A stretch of 64,000 nt of DNA from the NCBI GenBank assembly GCA_048772705.1, contig JBLWGC010000133.1, positions 62,001-126,000 on the forward strand, in the 5' to 3' direction. This document shows, in pieces, positions 26,309 to 64,000 of this stretch. Position numbers and translations under genes: made by a program. Within the stretch, counting starts at the first letter, position 1. Every line of letters begins with the position of its first letter. The notes beneath the pieces are model-generated. The model made no database searches. It was given only the letters and a program-made list of their open reading frames with translations, and was not told the origin of the DNA. Source of the DNA: Leidyana gryllorum EB-2025a (lineage: Eukaryota > Protista > Apicomplexa).

Positions 26309-26348
26309 ATTGGGTCTCGGAAAAAAATAAGAAACCCCAATACCAATA

Positions 26349-34704: not shown

Positions 34705-34987
34705 ACAAATAAATTTAGTCGCGCCCACGATTTTGAATCCCGACGCGCGATCGATCCCTCTCCCGGACAGCGGGAGATCACAATACTATTCTCCCAATAA
34801 AGATGTCAGGGGCCTATGCTTTGTGTGTTCGTTCGTTCGTTCGTTCGTGACTTGGAGAGTGAGTGAGTGACAGGCGGTGGCTGGGCAAAAAAGCTGATTG
34901 GGGAGGGAATCTGTCAATCTTGACAGAGAGAATGGACAGCCAAGTGTTTGGAAGGGGTCATTTTTTTTTTGAGGGCGTTGGTCCGCT

Positions 34988-36556
34988 ATGTCTGAAGAGG
35001 TGAGTCCGGGGGCCGTTTCAGGGAGCCGGAAAAGCAGCGTAGTATCTCTGAAAGGAGACGTTGCGGCTCTTTTGGGGAGGCCCAAGGGCTCTGAGAAGAA
35101 ATCGGATGCAGAGTGGGATCGTCAAATCGAGGAGAAGGCAAAACTGGATGAGCCTCCTGAATCATTTATCGAGGTAATCAAGAGCGATGAGAGCAAGAAT
35201 TATGTGTCTCAAACGGATTGGAAGGAAATGAACATCCCGGATCGGCTGTATATGAACCTCATCAACAATGAGTTCATGAAGCCAAGTCGTATCCAGGCTG
35301 TGGCTCTCCCTATGATATTGAATAGCACCACGCATATGGTGGCTCAGGCCAAAAATGGCACGGGCAAAACTGCTACCTTTATTCTGTCTTCCATATGCAA
35401 GATCGACCCTGACATTCTCCGGCCTCAGGTCCTTCTCCTGAGTCCGAGCAAAGAGTTGGCCCAACAAAACCTGATGGTCTTCGAAAAACTGGCCGAGGGG
35501 ATGAACTTTACCACAATGTTGGGGTGCCCTCCGCTCGTGGACCCCATTACAACGGCTCAATTCGTCTCTGCCACCCCCGGCAAAATGATGGGCTGGACTC
35601 AACGGAACGCCTTGCCACTGGACCGAGTCAAACTCTTCATACTCGATGAGGCCGATATACTCGTCGACGGGACTCTGCCAACCTCTCTCGGCGGTCAGAC
35701 CTGGAAGATCGCCAAGTGCCTCACGCGATACTCTCCCGACGCTCAAGTACTCCTATTCTCGGCCACTTTCCCAGAACGAGTACACAGCTTCGCCAAACTC
35801 ATGGCCCCCAAAGCTAACAGACTCATCATGAAGACTAAAGACTTGAAACTCACCAGTATTTGTCAATTCTATCTCAAAGTTGGGAGTACACAGGAAGCGA
35901 AAATCAAAACTCTCGCCGCCATGTATGCTGCTCTCGTCATCAATCAGTCAATCATCTTTGTCCGCTCTCGACAAGACGCGGTCAAAGTTGCCAAGACTGT
36001 TCGCGAGTTCGGTTGCGAAGTCGGTCTAATCTACGGATCCGGCGCCATGGCTGAGGAGGCCGACAAGATGTCTCTCGAAGAGAGAGATAGAGTCATGGAG
36101 GAGTTCAGAGAAGGCGTTATCAAGTGTCTTGTCACCACCGACCTCTTGGCCCGAGGTATTGACATCCCTCAAGTCTCCCTCGTCGTCAACTATGACCTTC
36201 CTATGGCAATGCAACAAAACAGAGATGTCTTCGACCCAGTCACAGAACGCCACGTTGCTATGGTAAGCCACCTATCAATCCGACCAGTCTCGCAAAACAC
36301 TCTCCACAGGAAACCTATCTGCATAGAGTTGGCAGAACCGGACGATTCGGCAGCCGCGGAGTTGCTATAAACTTTGTCTGCAATGAGTCTGAGGTCAGAT
36401 ACATCAAAACCATCGAAGACTACTATCAGTAAGTGCACAACACCTCCATCTTCCCAATATCATGCTATCGTTCACAGGATCGAGATTCAAGAGATTGGAC
36501 AGGATTTCGAAGCCCTTGAGCAGATGGTTCGACAGCTTCGCACCGTCCCGGTCTAG
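34988..36556 (+). CDS. DBP5: DEAD-box mRNA export helicase Dbp5/DDX19
   Basis: KPSRIQAVALPMIL, AQAKNGTGKT, LDEAD, FSATF, TTDLLARGIDIPQVSLVVNYDLP, ETYLHRVGRTGRFG after splicing. Confidence 0.9.
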
Positions 36557-43891: not shown

Positions 43892-44264
43892 ATGAACGAA
43901 GCGGGCCGTGAATCTGGGGGTCTCTCTCTACCTCCGGCTAACCGTGAGCTGCGGGAGCAGGAAAAGCTGACTTTGCACGGGGATGAAGTTATGGTCAACT
44001 TCAAGATGCCGTCAGGCGAGACCATCTCGTTGCAGGTAGAGTTGGCACCGACACGAGGGCGATCTGACTATCAACAAATTGCAGGCGAAGGCCGGGACGG
44101 AGGTAAAGAAGATCAAGATGCAGATAGAGGAGAAGACTGGTCTGCCACATGGCAAGATAGAGCTGACCTACGACGGGAAACTTCTCATTGACCCGATTTC
44201 GTTGGTGGACGGATGGGGACCCAACCCCAAACACTACGATGTTCTGGTCAAGCTCAGAGAGTGA
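43892..44264 (+). CDS. Small ubiquitin-like domain protein, 2 exons
   Basis: VMVNFKMPSGETISLQ|AKAGTEVKKIKMQIEEKTGLPHGKIELTYDGKLLIDP; no C-terminal GG. Confidence 0.8.
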
Positions 44265-44270
44265 AAAAAT

Positions 44271-47132
44271 ATGGGGGAAGTAGACAATCACCCCTTGCTT
44301 GGTTCTGAATACAACGTCCACGACGAAGCTTTCGACCTGTGCTTCGTCTTCAGAACACGTCAACACATCAACCGACGAGTTACTCGACTCGAAGGGGAAC
44401 ACAAAATCAAACGAATTTGTTGTGCAAGAGAGACGTATAACCTGAGTAATGACATATCGCAATTGCCCGCCTTCTACCGTCTTGACGATCTCAACCTCTC
44501 CGAGATAACTATCGCTCAACTCAACACATTCTTCTTCGATCTCTTCGTCAGACTCGCCGAAGAGCAATGTGGTGCCATCGTACGGCAAACCACCAGTAGA
44601 AATGGACTGTTCATAATGGTCTTCCTCACGCTACCCGAGCTGGTCGCGAGAGAAGTAGCCGACGAAATGAAGTACCCTCTACAGATCGAACCTACCCTGG
44701 CGCCCCGCGCCTTCTACAAGTGAGCTCCTACCTCTGCCTTTGCTGCTGTGCCCCCTAATTCTCACCCACCTCCAATCTCTCTGTGTGTGTGGGGGGGGTG
44801 TCTTTTTGTGTGTGTGGGGGTGTGTCTATGTGTGTCTCTGTCTCTGTGTGTCTCTGTGTGTCTCTGTGTGTCTCTGTGTGTCTCTGTCTGTCTCTGTCTC
44901 TCTGTCTGTCTCTCTGTCTCTCTCTCTGTCTGTCTCTCTGTCTCTCTCTCTGTCTCTCTCTGTGTCTGTGCTGCTTAGCCGTCCCCTTTGCCGCCCTCGC
45001 CGACATGTTTTTGCATTTACAGAGAGAATCCCCATTTCACTACTCCCTTCAAGCACTTCGATAAAGCCATTGAAGCCGACGACGGGATGGCCTGCATGGC
45101 GACGTATGGCCAAGTGTGGCGGCGTTATCCCCGGATGACTGTGGCGGGTCGAGAAGAGCGTTCCATTTTCACGTGAGTGCCGTCTCCTTTTTGTCTCTCC
45201 ATTTTTAGGTGTGTACAGAGAAATCGATCGCGCGCGTCTGCTGATGCGATGTCTTGAAAAGGTTTTGAGTATTGAAGACATGTGTCAATTAACCACTATG
45301 GAGTGTTATTATCTGCCTCCCCGTCCCATTGAATTGTCTATTCTCACGAGTCACTGGGCATCCTGGCGAAAAATACATCGCTTGGATCAACCCTTGTACC
45401 ACATTCGTAACTATTTTGGCGAAGATGTTGCCTTATACTTTGCTTGGACTGAAGAATATGCCCGAGTACTGATGGTTCCGGCAATTGTCGGAGTACTTTT
45501 TGCCTTTGCTCGGTGGAAATTAGATCCCAAGGAGAACTATAAGTCCATAGCAATGGACATATTCCGAGTCCTCTATTCCATCGGAAGTGCTGTTTGGTAT
45601 ATGTGGTTCATTCAAAGATGGAAAGCACGCCAGGATCTCTTGAAACTCCAGTGGGGGCTCCACCTCACAGAGTCGTCCCTCACCGAGCAACCCGAGAGAT
45701 CCGGGTTTGAAAACGATTCCTGGATTGTGGACCCCTCGAATCCCAATCGAGTCATAACGTGGTACTCTCCCGCGAAATGGCGAATCCGCCAATTCATCTC
45801 TGCGGTAGGGACACTGCTGGCCACAATTACAGCTGTGATCGTCGTAAACGGCGAACTCCACGGTAATTGTAAACCATCTTGCCACACTGTCAATTCCCCT
45901 CGCCGCAGAGTCCATTTTGCATTGGATGAACATTGACGATGATATTGAGGCGACTGTCGAATCTTATTTTCCCGACTGGTTCACGGCTATTATATCGCCA
46001 CGACCAGTCATTGTAGCTCTATTGGCGTTTGGCTGTGAGATTGTGTTCACAGTCGTGTCAGAATCCTTCACTGTCCTGGAAAATCACAAATACCACAGAA
46101 CGTTCGACCGTTCTTTGATCAAAAAGCTCTTCTTATTCGCCGCATTTGACTACTTTATCCCCCTCTACTATCTCGCATTCGTCAAGGTAAGCCCAGATCG
46201 GTCAATCGATCGATCAATTTCTTTCAAACTCCCAATTCCATCAGATGTATTCTCACCCTTGCTGGGACGAGGATCCGGAGGAAGGGCGGTGTCTGAGAAG
46301 CTTGGAAAGCCAAATCAAAACGTTGTTTGTGGTAGCTGCCTTCAGCAATTTAGTTGAAATCGGCAGACCGTAAGTTGTTCGTTGAAGATGTGATACTGAG
46401 TCCTCTGCTGCTCCAACAGACGCATTTTGAGCCGCATCCAACAATGGTGGTATAATCGAAAGTGCGACAAAGCTGCGGCTCCATTTGAAAAGGAGTTTTA
46501 TAAAAGTGCTTACGATGGAACACGCGGAGACTTCCAGGAGATGATGTTCATTATGATGTTAGTAGGCTTCTTCGGGGTCGCGTGGCCCATCCTTTCCGCT
46601 CTGGCCTTCATCATTGTCGTCCTTGAAGTAAGTTTGCTCCTCCGTAAAGCGTGTTCGATCGAGAGACACACACTTTTCGCCTCCAACAGATCAGAGTAGA
46701 TGCAATGAAATTGACACGGTCGCGCCGTCCTTTTCCAAGACCCGCTCATGATATTGGTGCTTGGACAGGCGTTGTTACCACAGTGTCTAACATTACGATT
46801 GTCACCAATATAGCGCTTTGTGCGTTCACGACGTTCGGAAAATCCCTGCCACTGTTTGACAAGTTAGTCATAACTATAGTGAGTTTGTGGTTATTGCAGT
46901 GCGGTGTCATGTTTCATGCGCACAGATATGCACGCTCGCGGCTCACGTCGCGAGAGAGTTTACCAGATGGGGCGGGACCCGAATGCGAGAACAAGTCAGA
47001 TTACTGAGGGCTCAACAAGCAATAGTGGAGTTCGAGGCGACCTGGGGAAAACATGTTAAGAAGGTTGATCTGATGAACACGCGAACGGTTGTTCAGCAAG
47101 ACTGGGCAGCCACGGCAGCACTAACTAAATAG
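44271..47132 (+). CDS. Anoctamin/TMEM16 family scramblase or channel, multi-exon
   Basis: QPLYHIRNYFGEDVALYFAW, LENHKYHRTFDRSLIKKLFLF, DFQEMM...FGVAWP, E|IRVDAMKL..RRPFPRPAHDIGAW. Confidence 0.92.
44776..44970. repeat. Compound (TG)/(TC) microsatellite inside an expanded anoctamin intron (about 44720-44979)
   Basis: TCTCTGTGTG decamers grading into TCTCTG and TCTG repeats. Confidence 0.95.
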
Positions 47133-51059: not shown

Positions 51060-52024
51060 TCAAAAATGCTCAAGCACTTCTTTGGGCAGGGGACGTGTCT
51101 CAACTATCTCCTTGACCGTCTGAAAAGAGGTCTCATTTCTATGTTGGGCACAATGATCCGATCGTACCGATTCATCGTCAACTTGGTCGAAAATCTCCGC
51201 CTCTCCAATCCCGCACCAGTCGGTCTGTAATTGCGACCCCTCTCTCTCTTTCTCACCAGCCGGATTCCCATTGATCGGCCATTCGCACAATTTCAGTCCC
51301 TCACACCGTTCCAAAATCGGAACATTCTTAATCGAACCGCTCAAGACACACGACACTGTGTCGTGAACCCTCAACTGGTGGTGGCAGAGCATTGATGTGT
51401 GTGTGTGTGTGTGTGAGCTTACCTGGCGAGCGACTAGCCAGAAAGTGCAATTTGAACAGTCATCAATGGAGACCGAGGTGCGTGCGGCCGGCAAGCTGAG
51501 ACGACGGAGTGAGAACGGTGGTTTGTTGTCGCTGTCACTCACCAAACACGACATGTCTTGAGTTCCTGGAGTCTGGCTGTCTCCACGATCGCCTTGACGA
51601 TAATCGTTTTATCGCAAATACCCTTCAATACCAAAATACCATTCGCAGGGATCTGAGTCTGAGTGATTAGCAAAACAGTCTCGTCGTGTTGGGGGTCAGC
51701 CGCGAGGTCAGCTCTGCTCCGAATACTAACAGCAGCCACACCAGTATCCGCACCCTCTCCTCCTCCAGTGTCAGTGCTCAGCAGCACCGGCTGTTTGGCG
51801 AGTTGGGACTCGTCCGCCTCCAAGTTGGTGGTGAGGTGTTCCAGATTTACCCGTTCGGCGGCACGGCGGAGGGCGGCAGCGCTGTCAAGATACCACCGCT
51901 GTCGGCGGGGAGGCAGCCGGGAGTGTTTGACGTCGTTCTCGAACGCTCGGATATCATGTGTACTAGGAGTGGTGGATTGTAGGCTGTTGAGTCGTTCCTG
52001 GAAAGTCGCCTCTAAGCCCGACAT
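51060..52024 (-). CDS. TBCC: Tubulin-binding cofactor C
   Basis: Beta-helix SVSIDDCSNCTFWLVARQ|LRVHDT...PILERCEGL...FDQVDD. Confidence 0.78.
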
Positions 52025-52050
52025 TTACCCTATATACTTTTATTTTCTAC

Positions 52051-54275
52051 CTAATGCATGTGGGGGTGAACAGCATTCTGCTGCTCCCCGGATTCTGCCA
52101 TTGCCGCCTCCTCAGCCTGAACAACGCGATGCCAATTCACACCTCTGGGCCCGGTATTCGATGTTATACGAGTGTGATTCACCAGATCTGCAGCCTTCTT
52201 CCATTCACTGATCTTCTCGCCCGTCGTAGACTCCCATTTTAGAATATTCATAGACTCCTCCCACGATATGGGAATCCCCAACTCTGGCACAACCAATGTC
52301 AAAGTCAGACGATCGGCGTCCCGATGCAGTGTCTTTGGCTCCACCTCTGTCTCCAAATCCCGTATCACTTGTTCAGCCGCCGACTGCAACAATCAATCAA
52401 TCCTACCCACATCTCGCTCAAATCACTCACCCCCGCATCAACGATGGTGTCCGCCAGTGATCCCTTTCCGCCAGATCGCACCCAACCGGCAGCGTAAACT
52501 GGACACTGACCAGACTCAGAACCCGCAATCTTATTGCCTTGCGGGGCAAAGTTCTTCTTCCGCAGATTGTTCTGAAATCGCCATTCACGTTGTCACCCCT
52601 CTCACTTCCCTTACGTTATGCTCGGCGTCATAGAAAGTTTCCCAAGGCTTCTGTGGCGCTGTCGAGCCAACAGTGCCATACCCTAAGCACTTGACAACCA
52701 AACGAATGCGATCAAGCAGCTCCCGGGGAGCATCATCGGCGGGATTGGAAGCCAACGCATCTCTCGCAATCCGCCCACCCCGTGGCATATACAGTTTAGT
52801 CTTGGCAATTTCCACTCCAGTCACAGTGTCTTCCATTCGCGGGCCCTCGGTCAAAATCCGAGTCGGTTGATTACAGAATCGCAGCCACACATTCACAGCG
52901 TCCGGACTACGCTCCACCGCATCCAATCGGGGGTTCCCGTTGCGATCCAAGTCGGCCTCAGCTACAAGTCTCTCATAATTAGCTACACCTTGTTCTATCA
53001 ATGCCGCCATTCGCTGAGCCTTCCGATCACGCTGCAATCGAGAATCAAATCATTTGCCGTTGTCAACCACACACGTGTGTGCAGAAGCAAGTGGGTGTCT
53101 CCGCTGCCTACCTTCAGTTCCTTGGCACATGCGGGCAAGTCCAAGCTGGCTTTATATTCATCGGGCTTCACCAACACTGTAGCTTTGTCGCTGACACCAA
53201 ACAACTGCAAACAAGACCATGGGAGATGATTCGGCAGCAACTTCTCGTGTCAGTACCTCTCGTAGCGTGGCAATGTCCCAGCTGGATTGCAGGAACCCAC
53301 GGCGACCAATCATCTGGAAATCTCGAATGTATTTGCCATGGAGTTGATGCAGAAGACGACGGCCTGCTGGCGGCAGGTGGCGACAATCAATAGTCTCGGG
53401 GTCTCTCAAGAATATACGCACTATATCAGTTGCCACGTTGCCTTGGCTGAATTCAGGATCGAGGACTCTGCTATGCGGTGGGGTCTTCGGAGCGAGAGAG
53501 CTCACCCGATCAGGACAACTCGATCATCTACATTCGTGGGGTCAAAGAAACGTCCGAATCCCCGTGCTACGCGACTTGTGATTCCTCCCTGCTCAGACGT
53601 AGCCGAGACTGATCGAGCAAGGGAGTAATCCAACAAGTGCGAATCGATCGTCCATTGACCCAATTCGATCATAACACCCGGGACTTTGCGATAGACGTCA
53701 TACAAGTGCCCTGGAGGGGCCAGCGGTCGCCCGTTGTACCATTCAATAACATCTTCGGCGGTGGTGACCCCCTTGGCGAACTCCCCGGGGATGGCCAAGT
53801 GTGGATGGTCTTTCCGCTCAGAGACGCTCGCTATTCCGGTGCAGAGAATGACTGCGTCATAGTTCTTGCGCAGCATTCGCAGCTGCAGGAAGCGTCCCAA
53901 CTCCACCCCGCCGAAGAACTCGAATCTGAAACTATCATCGTCCACTTCTCTATAGCGAGCCGCTCCTTCAACCAAAGAGTCTCCTACGGCTTTGATGCTT
54001 GGGTGGTCTGGTGCGACACCGAGACGCACCAATCCCAGTGGGACCAAAGAAGCCTCGAAGACATCAACCTAAGATCAGATGATTGATCGGTAGTGGGGAG
54101 AGTTGCTCACTTGGAGAGGACAGGGCGCCGGGTCCTTTTGCGTCCAGCGTTTCCCTAAAGCGCGGAGGGTGGCGAGTCCTGCAGGTCCCGCGCCACATAG
54201 GGCTATACGATAGGAAGGAGGATGGTGGGTGAAAAGCTTAGTGGCATAGAATCGACTGCGGGGGGCTAATAACAT
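52051..54275 (-). CDS. FDXR: Mitochondrial NADPH:adrenodoxin/ferredoxin reductase, multi-exon
   Basis: GAGPAG, GLVRLGVAPDHP, YDAVILCTG, WYNGRP, IG|QGNVATD, IGRRG, VYAAGWVRSG; N-terminus MLLAPRSRFYATK resembles a mitochondrial presequence. Confidence 0.9.
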
Positions 54276-54296
54276 TGAGAATAGTTGTTTTTGCAC

Positions 54297-55298
54297 TCAA
54301 GAGGCGCCTAGAGAGGCTTCGCGTTCAGAACCAAATCGAGCAGTGGCACGTCTACCCTTAAAGGGATATGGGATATGTGTGAGGGAAGATGAGGAGGATT
54401 GTGTGGACACAGGTCTCGGACGAGGATGATACTGGGGATTGTTGGAATCGGATGAGATGGGCAACCGAGACTCATAGGAGATTGGCAATCTGGAACTCGG
54501 GTCTGTACTGGACCCCTTGAGGATACTGGTCGGGAAGAACTGAAATCTAGAAGGAGGTATGGGTTTGGTCCTCGGCTGGTAGGCAGGATCATCGAAGCCA
54601 CCTTCGAATGGAAATCTCCGGGATTCTGCACTCAAACCGCTAAGCAACCAGTTGCTCGGCCGGCTGCGCGGAGGGGGACTTCGAATCAGCACCGGATCGT
54701 CTTCCGAATTACTGCCACATAACTGGTGTTGGTGGCCAGGGAACAAGGGAATGCGTGTACTATTGGTGGACATCGAGGGTGCTGGACTAAAAACGCCGAC
54801 TCGAGCGTCCCACTCCTCCGTACCTTCGAGCAGGAGACAATTCGGACTGCCTCCGTAATTATTATCACCCCCGCGGACAGCAGCAGCTCCACCGCCGCCG
54901 CCCCCTCGGTGATCGACTCCCAATGAACTACTATCCACCTCACTCGCCAGATATCCATCTTGATAGACATAAGCTTGTACATCCGCATCGTCGTAGTCGC
55001 AGCCGTTGCCATCGCCGCCCCGACGATCCTCGAAACTCGCGTCGCCGTCACGGGCTAACACAGGGTCAAAAGTGACGCCAGCAGTTCGCTGCTTGGCATA
55101 GACTATGGGGACTTGGCCATCGCGTGTTTCCATTAGACATTTTCTCGGTACTTCAATCATTGGGTTTAAGAACCGACCTGAAGCCGCCCGCGTGACGCTT
55201 CGAGGGAAGACGCGGTGATACGGTCGACACGGAAAGCCAGAATCTGGCCCATATTCACGCAGACCTCCGATGGTGACCGACCTCTGTACCGAAGCCAT
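54297..55298 (-). CDS. Hypothetical intronless protein of about 333 aa
   Basis: First ATG of ORF 54297-55502 downstream of the MIP18 stop (MASVQRSVTIGG); fills the gap almost exactly; no family recognised. Confidence 0.6.
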   Translation of the reverse strand: MASVQRSVTIGGLREYGPDSGFPCRPYHRVFPRSVTRAASGRFLNPMIEVPRKCLMETRDGQVPIVYAKQRTAGVTFDPVLARDGDASFEDRRGGDGNGCDYDDADVQAYVYQDGYLASEVDSSSLGVDHRGGGGGGAAAVRGGDNNYGGSPNCLLLEGTEEWDARVGVFSPAPSMSTNSTRIPLFPGHQHQLCGSNSEDDPVLIRSPPPRSRPSNWLLSGLSAESRRFPFEGGFDDPAYQPRTKPIPPSRFQFFPTSILKGSSTDPSSRLPISYESRLPISSDSNNPQYHPRPRPVSTQSSSSSLTHIPYPFKGRRATARFGSEREASLGAS

Positions 55299-55309
55299 CG
55301 CATTAGCAG

Positions 55310-55967
55310 CTAAAAAATCGTCATCAAACTGATGTCCGTGACTTCGTGATCGGGTCTGTCCGAGGTTCCAACACCACCAAACCAGACGTTCCGTTTGACC
55401 GCATCGTCCAATGTCCGAGTTCGGCTCACTCCCTTCACAATCATCCCCAACACATTCGGGTTTTCCAGCGCAGCAATCACTCGTTCTGCGACCAAGTGTC
55501 AATAGTACAGCCCAATGTCAATTTCTCACCCTTGTCTGCCAACTGTTTGTTGATGGACTTCTCTGACGCATGAGAACCCGGTGTCACGCGCACCCATACG
55601 CTGTACCCCACCGGCAGTGACCATAACAAGACACAGCGTAGCATCAACCCTATCAATGTGGCCTGTGAACAGTGCGGTACAGTCGGCGTGAAGCGCAATT
55701 GCACTCGCTGCCCGCTGACTTGTATCATATCCAGTCCCACTACACCTAACTCCTCCAGACTCAAAGGGTACTCGGGGTCTTTAAGTCCCCGTATAATCTC
55801 GAAGATTTCCTGCAGCCGCAACCTGTCAAAGAAAGATCTCCATTGGTCCTTACCAATGCGTCAATAGGTTCATATGGGTGGTTTGGCTGTCGTAACTCAT
55901 TCGCTGAAGGTACTGTCAACCTCTGGACCAGAGATTTGGATATAACTGAGGGCGCGGGGTTCTCCAT
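55310..55967 (-). CDS. CIA2: Cytosolic Fe-S assembly component MIP18/CIA2 (FAM96), 3 exons
   Basis: EIFEIIRGLKDPEYPLSLEELGVV, FTPTVPHCSQATLIGL, PGSHASEKSINKQLADK|ERVIAALEN. Confidence 0.93.
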
Positions 55968-55981
55968 GCACAGTTTTTTTG

Positions 55982-57589
55982 TTATTTCTGCACGAACTGT
56001 ACGAAAGGAGTTATTTCCATTGAAACATAGGGATAGTAATCCCCTTCTTCCTCGGCACCAGCAGCACCTTCGTCCTTCACCCCAAAGTAATTCTTCCCAA
56101 TCTGATGCTTGGAAGCGAACAGATCGTCCAACTCCCGACGCAACTTGGTCTCTTTCACTTTCGGAGCCAACCGTATGATGAAAGCGCTGAAGTCGGGTGG
56201 TAAACCGTATCGCAACGTCGCCTCCACAAATACACGCACAGCCTTCAGATGAACCCAGTTCGTGAAACACTCAGAGAAGGCGGCTGACACAATACGCGAC
56301 AGCACACTTTCCTGACGAGATCGTTCTGCCTCCAGTCGTGCCCGTTCACTCGATTTGAGCTCATATGCTCGTTCACTAAACTTGAACTCGCGAATTGTGA
56401 TACTGCAAGAAGTGGTCGGCAAGAAACAACGACGCGGGTGGGATAGCAGGGGAGACACCGGTGATTCGAACAACGCCTACCGATGATCGCGGGCTTTCTC
56501 CTTCACGATGTCAATTCGTGACTTGAAGCATACGAAAGTCCAGATTGAAGCACCGTCTTTATCAATTGGACTGTACTTCCTGTGGGAGCACACACGTGTG
56601 TGTGTGGGAGAGCTTCCGGCAGACATGATCCAGCTTACTTGTGACTATATGGCACGACCTTGTCGTCCCACTTCCAATACTTGTCAGCAAAGCCTGTCTC
56701 AGTTCTTCATAGACGCAGACGCATGCCCTCGAAATTCACTTGAACGCTCACCTGGGTACAATGGCTACTACGGTAGTGAGATGCTCCGTTTCTATGAAAT
56801 CCTGCAAGCCGGCCGAGCATGGGTGAGGACGGATAGTGTTCAAGACTTACCTGTGAACTGCATATCTGTGGAGTCAGTACATCGATCAGATCTCGTGAGA
56901 CGAAAGACAGACTATGCAGCATTTAGAATACAGATCCCGGCTTTACTCTCACCCCTCTGACTTGTTGCTGGCTGTTGAGGTAGTTTTGATTTCAGCAAAG
57001 AGAGCCGCCTTGACCCGTACTTCCTCGTCCAATTTAGCCACATTCTGCAGAATTCACCTTCCAGTTCAAGCAGCCTGTCGAGCGAGTTGTCGTTACTCAC
57101 CGCCACCAGTTGATCAACATTCTGCTTGAGCGACCGGTTGCGAGGATACTTGGCTTCATCCCAGATGAACCGTCCCAGATACTGTTCGGCGGAGACTTGA
57201 GAGGAAGAATTGGAATGTGTGTCTCAGATTAGATGTCTTGAGACTCACAAGTATTCCGTTGCCAAACGATTTTGAACTCTGTGCTCGGATCTATTTCCAG
57301 GCCCATACGCTCAAGGCGACGGCAAGCTTGCTCAACGAACGAGTCCTGTTTGACCAGATCATCGGCCATACGCACAAGGTCATCTAGTCGCCCATACTTG
57401 AAGTTCTTGGGAATGTCGAAGACCTGTGTGAGAGAATGGATCACGTGGGTCGAGTTGATACTGTGTGCTTACGGCAGAGAAATCTATGAGACGGCCACCT
57501 TGTAACCGGGACTTTAGCAGAGAGTACATGGCCTCCCGACTGTCCTGTTCAGTAGGACTGGCGACTATCCAGAAGTCATTCCGTGACAT
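55982..57589 (-). CDS. VMA5: V-type ATPase subunit C, multi-exon
   Basis: FDIPKNFKYGRLDDLVRMADDLVKQD, WDEAKYP, FTNWVHLKAVRVFVEATLRYGLPPDF, DYYPYV. Confidence 0.93.
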
Positions 57590-57610
57590 CGCCGTGCGCT
57601 GTGGTGACGA

Positions 57611-58690
57611 CTAATTGATGTTGTTTCTTTTGAGCTTTTCAATCACAGAGAAGAATATTGGACCACATCCTTGGCACAAGTCTGGCAAAGCCAGCAATCC
57701 ATATTCTGTTCTACGTAAGACCATTCTCTTGGGCCCCTCGTCGAGTCCCTCGGCGTCTAGCGAGATGACCAGTTGCTGAGAGTCCAACTTGGAGTTGAGT
57801 TCTGCCACTACAGTCGCCTGGGGAACAGTTTGCAGCTTTCCGGCGAATTTCTTGAGAGCAGCGGCGACTACTTTGTCATTCTCAGCCTCGCTGAGCGAGC
57901 ATGTGGAGTATACCAAACGGCCGTCTCGGGCCGCTAATTGGTCCAGGGCGGTGTTGAGCAGCTTGACTTGAACCTCGCTGATACTTTTGGAGCTCGCAGG
58001 GGTCCAGTTGGCGAGAGTCCCATCCTTGAGGCGATGCCGATCACTCGAGCAAGGTGCGTCCACGAGTATCCTTGTATATGGGCCGTATCGGCTGATCTGG
58101 GTGTTGTTCTTGGCCGCGTCCGAGCAGACGACCTGGATTGTGCCTCTACGTTGCGGAAAGTACGAGAAAAGGTTGGTGGATAAGCGTTGAATCCGAGGAT
58201 GGCTGCTCTCGTTGGCGACCATTCTGACGCCCAGTGCTTTGGGCTGCTCCGGGGGGAAGAGTTGACTGGCTATCAACAAGGCTTTGCCACCAGGTGCCTG
58301 TGAGAAGGATTGATTGCGAAGGCTCTGTCTCGCTATGGGTCTCTCTTGAACTCACTGCGCATAGGTCGAGAGCGTTGTCTGAAGGACGAACATTGAGGGC
58401 CACGACGGGAAGGATGGATGCCGGATCTGTTCAGGAAGTCCAAAGATTATATCAGTTATTAGAGAGAATTGTGTTATACCCAAGAAATAGTCCACTTTGT
58501 TATCAGTATCCTGAACGGGTGATATAAAGCAGTTCGGAGCTAAGAGGGGAGTGGTTCCCCCTGGCGGCGGCGCGTGGGCTATACGGGCGAAGAGCTGAGG
58601 ATCCTCTATCATGGCTTGTATGAGGTTGGCACGCTCCTCATCGGACTTTACTGGGAGGCTTTTGGCCCATTCCTCCGAAGAATTGCTCAT
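57611..58690 (-). CDS. RNA m5C methyltransferase, RsmB/NOL1/NSUN family (NSUN3/4-like), 3 exons
   Basis: YFL|DPASILPVVAL...LDLCA|APGGK, ILVDAPCSSDR, LVYSTCSLSEAEND, GPIFFS. Confidence 0.88.
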
Positions 58691-59432
58691 ACGTCCTTGC
58701 CCAGCAGCAACAGAAAGCCCAAAATTCCAAGGACTCCCCATTTGAGACTGAAGTGGGAAACCATCGAGGGAGACTCCGGTGTTTCTTTCCACTTACGCAG
58801 GATAATCATTAAGCCAAATTGTGACCATTCCAACCTTTGGCGCGATACTGCATAGATTGTGAAGAGAGTCTAAAATCTCAGTTTGAACGTACCCAACAGC
58901 CTTTCCAACAATATCAGAGTTTCGCAGCCAATTCTGTCCTTCATTATATAATCCTCTGTCATCAACGCGGTTGTTGTCTCCCTTTGTGAGCAGCCACGAC
59001 TCGCCCTCAACTCTGTGTGTGTGTGTGTGTGTGTATTGTGAGATCTGAGTGTGGCTTACGGCTCGTGGACACTCAGGACTCTGTGTACAATGGGGATGCC
59101 TCGGCTTTCCACTTGGTACACAACAATGTCTCCGGCGTGGAGTGTGTCGGCTCCGGTGAGGAAGAGTACGTCTCCTCTGTACATTCCGGGCTCCATGGAC
59201 CCACTGAGTACGACGACCACAGGAGACTCGCAGTTAGTGACAGTCATGAGACATCTCCAGAGTACAAAGGCCGACAGAATGATACATCCTGTAGTGATAA
59301 CTTGATTGAGGGCCTAAAGTTGCAATAGTGGTGGGAAAGGGTCTCGAGTTTCACCTTGCGGGGTTTGCGGAGAATGCGTTTGATGTCACTGACGAGATCG
59401 CTAATACCTAAGCTCTCTATCAGGCTGCCCAT
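58687..59432 (-). CDS. SEC11: Signal peptidase complex catalytic subunit Sec11, 5 exons
   Basis: [57 protein letters not shown]|[19 protein letters not shown]. Confidence 0.95.
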
Positions 59433-59455
59433 CTTGAGTTTTTTTATTGAAGAAT

Positions 59456-62033
59456 ATGGCTCGTCGGAAAGCTGATGAGCTGGATGACGACCCCGACGCG
59501 AGTGACGGCAGAGTGAGTTTCGTACAGCGAGGCACCAAATGCTGCTTGAAACCCTCAGGGACCTCCCCAGAAGAAGAGGAAGAAGAAGGTCATAAGCTTC
59601 GTTGAGACTGAAGCTCAAGAAGACGAAGAGGGAGATTCTGAGGAGTACGAGGTGGACGGGGACGAAGATGGCTTTGTGTTGGACCACGACGAGGCAGAAG
59701 AGGCCCGTGAACTCGAGTTGGCTCAGAGAAGAAGGGCCGAGGATCGCATGAATAACCAACAGAGACGAGGTGGCGCTGGCCACTTTGCCACCAAAATCGG
59801 AGATTTGGAACGACGGTACCAGGACGAGGAGTATGACGCTGGTGAATTCGAGGAGGCCGTCGATGAAGGAGGAGACGGAGAGGTCGAGGGAGACGATGGA
59901 AACTATTACGAGGGCGGCTTGGAAGACGATTTAACTCGGATGCTGCCCAACGTGGGCGCCTGGAAGCTCTGGAAAGTCCCCACCATACGCCCGGGCGTTG
60001 AGAGGGAGACAGTTATCGCTATTTTGAAACGCTATGCGGAAACCCCCGAGGCGCAAAGAGCCACATTCCAAATCGGTTCGGCGTTCGCAAGTGACAATGT
60101 CAAAGGCGCTGTGTATGTTGAAGCCATCTCGCCTCTATATATCATCGACGCTCTCCGAGACATCAGAACCCTCGTTCTGGTCCGCAACCAAATCAAAATG
60201 GTCCCTATCAAAGAAATGACCGATGTCTTCAGGGTGGCGGGAACTGGCGAAGACTTCCCCCGCCGGGGAGAGTGGGCCAGATTCGCTCGCGGGCCCTATG
60301 CCGGGGACATATGTCTCGTTTCGGACGTGGATGAGTCCAGCCAGTCTGTCACTGTCCGTGTGGTGCCCCGTATCGACTTGGCTTACGAAGCCAAAGCCAT
60401 CCAAAAGGAGAACGAAGGACTGGAGAAGGTCCACGCGCCGCCCAAATCTCGACCTGCGCCCGGGTGTATCACTATCGCTGACCTCGAGGCACGCGGAATA
60501 GAGCCCGAGCGCGTCAATGATCTCGCAGAAGCGTTCAAATTCCGAAATTATGTCATTGAAGAGGCTACCGGGTACCTCTTCAAGACCACAAAGATTTCAC
60601 AACTGGTCACCGGAGAACGAGTCAAAGCAACGTCACTGGAAATCGAAGAGTTTATTGGAACAAGAGACCTCAACGAAATCATCACAGACTTCCAACTCAG
60701 CAACCGGGGTGTTGCAGATGCCGGCTTCGACGTCGGACAACGAGTTTGGATTATGAAGAAAGATCTCATGGGTATTAGTGGAGTCGTCAAAGCTAAAGAA
60801 GATGACCGTCTCGTCGTCCAACCGGAGGACTCGAGTCTGATGCCCATCACCATCGAACCCTCCTTTTGTGTCAAACGCTTCGACCGCGGCGAATCTGTCA
60901 AAGTCATCGCCGGACAGAACGAGGGCGACGTTGGACTCATCACCAAGTTGGAAGTTTCCAAGAATATCGCTCACGTACTCAGTACTGAGACACATAGACA
61001 GATCACTGTCAGTCTCGCTCATCTCGCCCCCATCCCCAATGACACTGTCACCCCCGTCGGGCTCACAAAGATCGACGGATACGCCATCGGTGACTTGGTT
61101 CAACTGGCTACCTCGCTGGAAGTCGGCGTCATAACAAAGATTCTCAAGACAAGGTGAGCTGCTGCAGCGCAGCGATCAACTCTCATAAAACAATGCTTCT
61201 CTCTCAGACGGATTGAAGTGCTCTGCAAAGATGGCACCATATCTTGCGATGTGTCTCAGCTGAGCGGCAAAAAGCAGCTCAAGTTGGCCCACGCGTTGGA
61301 CAGTCAAAACAACCAGTTCGGAACTGGCGAATCGGTCGAAATTCTGGAAGGCCCCTGTGCCAAGAAGACCGGAACCGTCAAGTATATATGGAAAGATACG
61401 GTATTCATACAGGTGAGTCGCATTGCCTCACTCACTCACTCAATTTATCGCATATGCCTTCTCTTTCGCAGATCCCCTCAGCTGTGACCTCAGCCGGTTT
61501 GGTCGTCTCGGAGGCCAACGCTCTGCGGTTGATGCAGGGAGACCGCGAAAAAGAGGCAGGAACCGGCGGAGGGGAGAACTTGGAGCTCGGGGCTCAACCC
61601 CGGCCGCAGAATGGCCAGAGCAACTTCCGCGGACGTGGTGGCTTTGCGGTAGGTGCCTTTCGGGCGGTATACGTAGTGATCGTGTGATCGTATTGGCGTA
61701 CGCAGGGTCGGGGTCAAATCAGCTTCCGGACGCAATTCAATCTGATGGGTAACCGTGTGAAGATTGTGGGCGGTCAGTATAAGGGAATGCTCGGAGAGCT
61801 CCGTGCAATTCACGGCCCTGATGCAGTGTAAGTGGGCGATTGAGGGACGACGACACTGATACTCTGTGTGATTTTGTTTTTGTAGGGTCCTGATATCAGC
61901 CCTGGGAAAGGAGGTCCCTTTGCCGCGCGTGCAGGTTACCCTTTGCGAAGGCGGGGGAGAGGGCGTGCAACGTTTCTTCCGTCCTTCTGGGGGTGGACGG
62001 GGACGCGGTCGGGGTCGTGGAGGCAACTTTTAG
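59456..62033 (+). CDS. SPT5: Transcription elongation factor Spt5 (acidic N-terminus, NGN, KOW domains), ending in an RGG tail
   Basis: FVETEAQED, LPNVGAWKLWKV, KGAVYVEA, WARFARGPYAGD, VPRID, FDRGESVKVIAG, VKIVGGQYKGMLG; stop TAG 62031-62033. Confidence 0.92.
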
Positions 62034-62678: not shown

Positions 62679-62699
62679 TCTGTATTGACTGAGAAAAAA

Positions 62700-64000
62700 A
62701 TGCGATGGCCACCAGAGGTTATAGAATCCTTCTGGAAAGTATGTTGTGGTGTAACTGATCTACGCCAAGCGAAGCTTCTCGAGGCCAAATTGAGGTGTGT
62801 GCCCGAACAGACACGGAGAGATTGACATTATTCTTTCGCAGGAAGGGCACAGGCACTGAGTATCTATTGGAGATCAACACATGTCACTGCTCTGGTGCCC
62901 AAGGCGACGATTGTGGCGGGGCGGCACATCACCACAAAGAGGGAGACGCCACGCATACTCACGGCGGCCGTAACTCTCTCGCGCCCTATTGTTTCCGCAA
63001 GAGCACCGGTGAGCAGCGAGCTGTCTGTCTGCGCGTGTCGAGACACTTTTTCGAATTAGATGACGAGTTGGGAGATTTGTTGCAGCGCTACACTCATCGT
63101 ACCATATTTATCCGAGACTATTTGGCCGAAGTCGCTGAAGTGGCAGCGGACACTTTCAATAAAGTCGTCAAACGGGCTGGGATCAGTGAGTGCCAATTTG
63201 ATCGACTTGAACACTTTGGAACACTAACACAGCGCAGCTGGAGAGATCAGAGAAGGCCTCTCTATCTCGAACCTGTTTGGAAAATGCCATCAGTCGAGTC
63301 ATCTCGCAGGCCATTCTCAAAGACGTGAGTTCCGGAAATTAGCGTCACGCCAACAAGGCTCTCCCTCTCTCTCTCTCTCTCTCCCTCACTCTCTCTCTCT
63401 CTCTCGCAGCGGCGCCAATCTCGCCAACACACTCAGCGAGACGGGGGTCTCGTGGCCTATGCCAGTAGTTATCCGAAAATGTATCCTGACTCCCCGTTTG
63501 TTGAGCTCGCATCGCTCAAGCCGGACCATATGGGAACGTTGATGAACAACGGTGTGGCCATTATCGACCATTGGCTCTCTCCCTCGGATGCGAACGCGTT
63601 GCGCGATAACTTTGATTGGCTCGAGATGAACAACGTCTATAACGATATGGTCAGACCACAGATATACTGAGAGCACAACAACGCACAGACACCGTTCTCT
63701 CCGGACCCTCATCGCACGGATCACTCTGCCTGGATCAACGGCGCGGAGATTGTCGAAAAAGTGCGGCTCCCCGTAAGCCACACTCTCGAAATCGTTTCTT
63801 TGTCACCCACCGGCGTCTCCCACCTGCAGGCCGTCAGACTGTTGCTGCAAAAGTTTGCAAGTTTGCCGTTTGAGCTCAATGCGAAGGCCAATCTCTCGCT
63901 GACTGTAAGTGGAGCCGCTGTCGGTGTGGAGCAAAGGATTGATTGTCGTCCTCAACAGATCAGCAACTCGGCACTGTTCAGCCTGTTCAGGAAGGAGGCC
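62700..64000 (+). CDS. 2OG-Fe(II) oxygenase, PHD/EGLN prolyl-hydroxylase-like; runs off the window end
   Basis: LMNNGVAIIDHWLS, spliced HRTDHSAWING, LLQKFASLPFELN; the catalytic HxD..H is not within the window. Confidence 0.6.
63360..63404. repeat. (CT)n microsatellite forming an intron polypyrimidine tract
   Basis: Direct sequence; ends at a CGCAG acceptor. Confidence 0.9.

Follow-up and report, generated by a model that had tools for sequence, protein, structure and literature searches.

In the genome of the gregarine Leidyana gryllorum the stop codon of a SEC11 gene and the start codon of an NSUN gene overlap in the tetranucleotide ATGA. AUGA overlaps serve translational coupling in bacteria and termination-reinitiation in some eukaryotic viruses. 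The locus raises the question of whether the overlap joins the translation of two spliced nuclear genes in a similar way, or whether it came about as intergenic DNA was lost to an extreme degree. We analyzed it within a stretch of 64 kb (the window, to which coordinates refer unless another sequence is named); the assembly from which this stretch is taken comprises 15.5 Mb in 237 contigs.

SEC11 and NSUN gene models

Spliced models of the two genes were searched one exon at a time. SEC11, the catalytic subunit of the signal peptidase complex, is encoded at 58687..59432 on the minus strand by five exons (59432-59355, 59313-59060, 59012-58893, 58847-58797 and 58747-58687) with a total length of 564 nt, corresponding to 187 codons and a stop. 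In the exon models the four introns are of the GT-AG type, 41, 47, 45 and 49 nt long, and their phases are consistent. Pfam analysis of exon 2 identified Peptidase_S24/S26 (PF00717/PF10502), and a search with the same exon yielded 1689 homologues, including named SEC11 proteins of plants, Entamoeba and Babesia. The catalytic motifs are intact in the exon translations: the serine in SGSMEP, the histidine in IVHRV and the Asp-rich GDNN..DD. The second intron (59013-59059, minus strand, 47 nt) is for the most part a (CA)n microsatellite, which reaches the acceptor AG.

The second gene encodes an NSUN4-like RsmB/F m5C RNA methyltransferase of 322 codons plus a stop and is located at 57611..58690 on the minus strand. 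Its three exons (58690-58480, 58426-58356 and 58297-57611; 969 nt in total) are separated by two GT-AG introns of 53 and 58 nt, and the reading frame ends with TAG at 57613-57611. Exon 3 matched Methyltr_RsmB-F in Pfam (PF01189, 8e-20), and the nearest PDB structures are those of NSUN4. Catalytic and SAM-binding motifs are intact (DLCAAPGGK, DAPCS and STCS, with the motif IV PC and motif VI TC cysteines). The best homologues in the protein search were gregarine NOL1/NOP2/Sun proteins of Blabericola, Protomagalhaensia, Gregarina sp. and G. niphandrodes, at 34-40% identity. This was the highest level reached in that search, and a metagenome scan revealed no closer relatives in which conservation of the junction could be followed. 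The exon models and Pfam data bear out the description in the earlier note of two spliced nuclear genes: both are intact and both contain introns.

The ATGA junction

Read 5′ to 3′ on the minus strand, the junction is ...CTG CTG GGC AAG GAC GTA TGA GCA ATT..., the shared nucleotides (58687..58690) being A at 58690, T at 58689, G at 58688 and A at 58687. The last exon of SEC11 is closed by TGA (58689-58687), and ATG (58690-58688) opens the sequence MSNSSEEW..., which is in frame with the NSUN exons. Direct reading together with the exon models therefore confirms that the SEC11 stop and the NSUN start share ATGA, with an overlap of 4 nt. The further claim that this overlap is invisible among unspliced ORFs turned out to be wrong, as a plain ORF list contains both 58687..58833 and 58352..58792 on the minus strand.

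A crude scan of ORF geometry detected four ATGA sites in the 64-kb window with two open frames that each score as coding; three of the four are plainly not gene junctions. By ORF geometry alone the SEC11/NSUN junction is not beyond chance, and the scan is too noisy for counting further tight junctions; Pfam analysis of genes at the other candidate junctions gave mostly no match. We consider the SEC11/NSUN overlap to be real because homology supports both protein ends.

At the SEC11 end, full-length homologues terminate 19-22 residues past an (N/T)(D/E)YP motif, and the tail in the present protein has 20 residues. Exon 5 and the tails of five homologues aligned over their full length. Because this alignment extends to the final residue, the TGA is a stop typical of the family. 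The SEC11 C-terminus is accordingly normal, as had been proposed, with a hydrophobic tail of the usual length. Direct reading also located an ATG in the last SEC11 intron (58766..58768, minus strand), which is in frame with exon 5. On an unspliced RNA, or on one started within the intron, it would be predicted to open a 26-codon uORF ending at the same TGA.

The start codon of NSUN

The N-termini of gregarine NSUN proteins have in common a Trp followed by a helix (W....YG..W..L..AL); the corresponding sequence here is EEWAKSLPVKSDEERANLIQAM. Three homologues (P0003, P0006 and P0077) start 3-5 residues before the conserved Trp, which is Phe in P0077; the gregarine orthologues begin with M-x(2-4)-W. 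In the G. niphandrodes gene an in-frame TAG is present five codons upstream of the annotated ATG. Judged by these alignments, ATG 58690 is the predicted start that fits the gregarine orthologues best. The expectation that the protein read from this ATG would include the N-terminal helix was upheld, the conserved Trp and helix both aligning with the gregarine orthologues. In G. niphandrodes there is also an out-of-frame ATG 7 nt upstream of the NSUN start (L001 5990-6003), and a back-to-back neighbouring gene ends 61 nt away.

Two other in-frame ATGs had to be weighed. The upstream one (58739..58741, minus strand) lies in ORF 58352..58792 without an intervening stop. Initiation there would add 17 residues and extend the coding overlap from 4 to 55 nt in two frames, with ATGA reduced to an internal Met codon. 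The NSUN frame is indeed open from 58792, ATG 58741 is the first ATG met by any mRNA that starts between 58767 and 58742, and longer N-termini occur in homologue models P0001, P0004 and P0075. We nevertheless regard this start as improbable: the 17 added residues have no match in the homologues, the G. niphandrodes orthologue is not extendable past its upstream TAG, and P0003, P0006 and P0077 begin close to the conserved residue. A 34-codon open frame has a chance of roughly 0.2 and is not unusual.

The downstream ATG (58610..58612, minus strand; MIEDP...) is 26 codons from ATG 58690 and was named in the earlier note as the alternative that would speak against the overlap. Were it the true start, ATGA would be a coincidence of no translational meaning. 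It is in frame, and the context of ATG 58690 has C at -3. Its use would, however, delete residues 1-26, in which the Trp and an L..A(L/M) helix are aligned to homologues from gregarines, Guillardia and Picochlorum. Because this conserved N-terminal segment would be lost, initiation at ATG 58612 is very unlikely, more so than at the upstream ATG.

Gene packing around the junction

Gene packing was measured within the 64-kb window, from which all spacer statistics are derived. SEC11 and NSUN are the first members of a run of seven genes on the same strand (51060..59432, minus) in the order SEC11 > NSUN > V-ATPase C > CIA2/MIP18 > orphan > adrenodoxin-reductase-like > unnamed. The seven genes have no common functional theme. 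Stop-to-ATG spacers along the run are -4, 21, 14, 11, 21 and 26 nt, and the following two are 88 and 150 nt, which makes SEC11/NSUN the tightest of six consecutive same-strand junctions. Since spacers of about 80-700 nt also occur elsewhere in the window, the run is unusually tight even locally.

At the first three junctions of the run (SEC11 > NSUN > V-ATPase C > CIA2) both ends are fixed by homology. The spacer between NSUN and V-ATPase subunit C (57590..57610, minus strand) comprises the 21 nt from the NSUN TAG to ATG 57589; V-ATPase_C matches in Pfam were obtained for the downstream exons, the second exon piece covering profile positions 32-79. The 11-nt junction between CIA2 and the orphan is less certain, with an out-of-frame ATG at -5 and an unusually long CIA2 tail. 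The CIA2/MIP18 frame (55310-55450, minus strand) continues for about 45 residues past ALENPNV, longer than is usual in the family. This may be a real tail or an unrecognised intron, and in the latter case the 11-nt spacer would change. The orphan ORF (54297-55298, minus strand) has about 330 codons and no Pfam match and is flanked by two Fe-S-related genes; where it starts is uncertain, the out-of-frame ATG being 5 nt upstream of the first in-frame ATG.

On its other side SEC11 is back to back with SPT5, which was identified by its Pfam domains. Only 23 nt (59433..59455) separate the SEC11 ATG at 59432 (minus strand) from the SPT5 ATG at 59456 (plus strand). This spacer could be a minimal two-way promoter, or the 5′UTRs could be shorter than 23 nt. 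It is A/T-rich, with a T7/A7 run at 59439-59445. The six tight junctions and the 23-nt SEC11/SPT5 spacer together imply that in this genome transcripts would start within or beside neighbouring coding sequence.

Another very tight junction was seen outside the seven-gene run, at 44262-44273 on the plus strand. Here a gene with a ubiquitin-like end (Pfam ubiquitin, 1.9e-6) stops with TGA at 44262, and the next long ORF begins 6 nt further on (TGA AAAAAT ATG).

Automated gene finding failed at such places. A dynamic-programming gene finder set to a high gene penalty joined the entire run into a single 'gene' with false introns across the junctions, and at a low gene penalty it split genes; both sets of predictions were discarded. 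Zero-spacer junctions thus make gene finders fuse or split genes, and gregarine annotation needs care at these points.

A/T tracts near start codons

An A or T run of at least 5 nt was present within 30 nt upstream of 5 out of 10 verified starts, the corresponding figure for all ATGs in the window being 2.7% (P about 3e-6). The enrichment is partly expected because the spacers are non-coding. The 64-kb window contains 12 A/T runs of at least 6 nt (26321-26327, 34961-34970, 44264-44269 and 62694-62700 are examples), and at least 9 of the 12 adjoin candidate starts, 1-45 nt upstream. A T10 run is found 17 nt before the ATG of a DEAD-box helicase gene at 34988. In appearance, the short A/T tract upstream of most neighbouring starts looks like a minimal promoter.

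The arrangement AAAAAACT-N4-ATG is common to the start of SEC11, which is in the back-to-back pair (59430-59444, minus strand), and the start of CIA2, which follows a 14-nt tandem spacer (55965-55979, minus strand). AAAAAAC-N(4-9)-ATG has only two matches in the window, these same two starts, where 0.47 would be expected by chance. This suggests that one start-proximal element may be common to tandem and back-to-back genes, in which case tandem genes would have initiation sites of their own.

Neither NSUN nor V-ATPase C has an A/T tract of at least 5 nt within 30 nt upstream of its ATG. For NSUN the tract is missing because there is no spacer to hold it; the nearest A/T stretch, AATTTT, is at about -35, inside SEC11 codons. 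As no upstream tract is visible, a promoter belonging to NSUN is assumed rather than seen. No ATG occurs in the 50 nt before the NSUN start codon, so that any transcript starting there would have a clean leader. Depletion of ATG upstream of starts was not significant among the 10 genes compared (median 76 vs 49 nt, P = 0.14).

Search for signals of translational coupling

In viral termination-reinitiation, TURBS motif 1 (UGGGA) pairs with 18S rRNA and is expected within about 100 nt upstream of the junction. UGGGA (TGGGA in the DNA) was absent within 120 nt upstream of the SEC11/NSUN junction and of every other tight junction; the TURBS-like element complementary to 18S rRNA that the earlier note had proposed to look for was accordingly not found in this interval. 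The predicted fold of 171 nt of RNA around the junction was no better than that of shuffled sequences (z = 0.33), and Rfam gave no match in the 47-62 kb part of the window. With its 187 codons, SEC11 is of a length after which reinitiation by eukaryotic ribosomes is poor.

No spliced-leader gene of the dinoflagellate/perkinsid type was found in the 15.5 Mb, in which the pattern had a single match with 3 mismatches; a divergent spliced leader may exist. An acceptor-like AG situated 7 nt upstream of the NSUN ATG was considered as a site of trans- or alternative splicing. Such a role is unlikely because it reads cAAG, whereas six verified acceptors have YAG.

In G. niphandrodes the neighbours of NSUN are a zf-A20/AN1 gene and an LSM gene, not SEC11. 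Coupling of the prokaryotic style, or termination-reinitiation of the viral style, is therefore unsupported at this locus: there is no UGGGA, the fold is ordinary, the gene pair is not kept in G. niphandrodes, and the overlap stands at the far end of a series of tight junctions.

Expression of the overlapping genes

Our preferred reading, to which we assign a probability of roughly 0.55, is that the ATGA overlap is a by-product of extreme intergenic loss and that SEC11 and NSUN have separate, overlapping mRNAs. As spacers shrink, an overlap of 4 nt (ATGA) or of 1 nt (TGATG, TAATG) would be the natural end point, because in neither case does a protein lose a residue. Each gene would most likely keep its own mRNA. 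Transcription of NSUN would begin within the last part of SEC11, and the SEC11 mRNA would have its 3′ end within NSUN. Ribosomes would then reach the NSUN start by ordinary cap-dependent scanning and would not be passed on from SEC11. The positions of these transcript ends are what we infer; what we observe is the overlap, the gene models with their protein ends, the tight packing of the neighbourhood and the lack of known reinitiation signals. The unrelated functions of the genes, the non-adjacency of SEC11 and NSUN in G. niphandrodes and the start-proximal tracts all suggest that separate mRNAs may be made.

A different possibility is that SEC11 and NSUN, and perhaps all seven genes, are carried on one polycistronic RNA, with NSUN expressed either by AUGA termination-reinitiation or after RNA processing to single-gene units. 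At the overlap there is no space for a promoter, and the A/T tract of most other starts is missing at NSUN. Because NSUN has no visible start element, a bicistronic RNA is somewhat more plausible here than at the neighbouring junctions. In Blabericola, Protomagalhaensia and Gregarina sp. the NSUN homologues (P0001, P0003 and P0004) are ORF p4 or p5 on RNA contigs of 5-14 kb. These homologues come from rnaSPAdes/TransDecoder transcriptomes (PMC8051059), and multi-gene RNA contigs seem to be common in gregarine transcriptomes. Such contigs fit both readings, since overlapping mRNAs and true polycistrons assemble alike. Non-trans-spliced polycistrons of 2-4 genes exist in Cryptosporidium parvum, which is closely related to gregarines. 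The cell probably requires little of an NSUN4-like enzyme, and for such amounts inefficient reinitiation could suffice. Against this, the length of SEC11 and its several internal ATGs exclude leaky scanning past it, and without a special element reinitiation is expected to be poor. The 120 nt without UGGGA, the fold z of 0.33, the lone imperfect match to a spliced-leader gene and the separation of the pair in G. niphandrodes all count against a shared RNA, as does the start-proximal tract that neighbouring tandem genes carry, like that of the back-to-back promoter. We therefore hold this explanation to be doubtful, though it has more in its favour than either of the other NSUN starts.

The two genes might also share one promoter through alternative splicing, if SEC11 exon 1 were joined directly to exon 5 to give NSUN an N-terminal extension of 45 residues. 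By frame arithmetic alone, exon 1 ends (59355) in phase 0, and the NSUN frame is the one that begins with the first base of exon 5 (58747). The latter part of the resulting extension is basic. NSUN4 is mitochondrial in other eukaryotes and needs a targeting peptide, which MSNSSEEW... does not resemble. The agreement of frames is, however, a 1-in-3 coincidence, and the orthologue in G. niphandrodes lacks the extension and is preceded by a different gene. The chances of an isoform of this kind seem slimmer than those of any other explanation considered.

Comparison with known systems

In likeness the locus is close to the genomes of microsporidia (Encephalitozoon, Antonospora) and nucleomorphs, in which hardly any intergenic DNA is left and neighbouring genes touch or share a few bases. 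For microsporidia, transcripts that overlap and 5′UTRs that are very short are described in PMC3629993, which cites Williams et al. 2005, and that article and work cited there document overlapping transcripts in compacted genomes. In these systems transcripts are known to start in the upstream gene or to end in the downstream gene, whereas here the arrangement is known from the genes. A further difference is that the gregarine is an apicomplexan with many spliceosomal introns of 41-58 nt in these genes, while microsporidia have few or none.

Cryptosporidium parvum produces non-trans-spliced polycistronic mRNAs of 2-4 genes, as revealed by long reads (bioRxiv 10.1101/2025.01.17.633476). It belongs to a related lineage and resembles the gregarine in its compact genome, in its unrelated same-strand neighbours and in that no spliced leader was found. 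Its polycistrons contain an internal untranslated region, whereas the spacers in the seven-gene run, as read from DNA, are -4 to 26 nt.

The geometry of the junction is that of the TURBS viruses (caliciviruses, and influenza B with M2/BM2), in which a long upstream ORF ends, and the next one starts, in AUGA. SEC11/NSUN differs in being a cellular and not a viral pair, with no UGGGA in 120 nt and no distinctive structure. Bacterial operons coupled by ATGA have the same 4-nt overlap in a dense array on one strand, but SEC11 and NSUN are eukaryotic genes with introns, are read by 80S ribosomes, have unrelated functions and are not kept as a pair in a relative.

Among gregarines, the genome paper of Porospora gigantea gives a coding density of 84% and does not discuss spacers or overlapping transcripts; introns of that species peak at 28 nt, compared with 41-58 nt here. 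Our literature search brought up no article dealing with overlapping genes or with polycistrons in this group, and in the literature searched a tight architecture on a genome-wide scale has not been described for them.

Significance

The SEC11/NSUN overlap looks like a further case of the gene overlap that is known to be driven by compaction, and not like a singular device. It is a less probable proposition, and one that we would put forward with reserve, that gregarines express runs of intron-containing genes as true polycistrons, the downstream protein of a zero-spacer pair being made by TURBS-less reinitiation after a long ORF, or as an exon-skipping isoform that shares the promoter and first exon of SEC11. 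If this were true, either the polycistron with reinitiation or the shared-promoter isoform would be a mode of gene expression undescribed for apicomplexans.

The locus illustrates how little intergenic DNA may be left in a free-standing eukaryotic nucleus still rich in introns, and it raises the question of where promoters and poly(A) sites are placed when there is no spacer at all. Should the genes of the run prove to be transcribed as polycistrons, the Cryptosporidium finding would be extended to a much tighter architecture. If they have overlapping mRNAs, as in the reading that we prefer, gregarines would be the third independent case after microsporidia and nucleomorphs.
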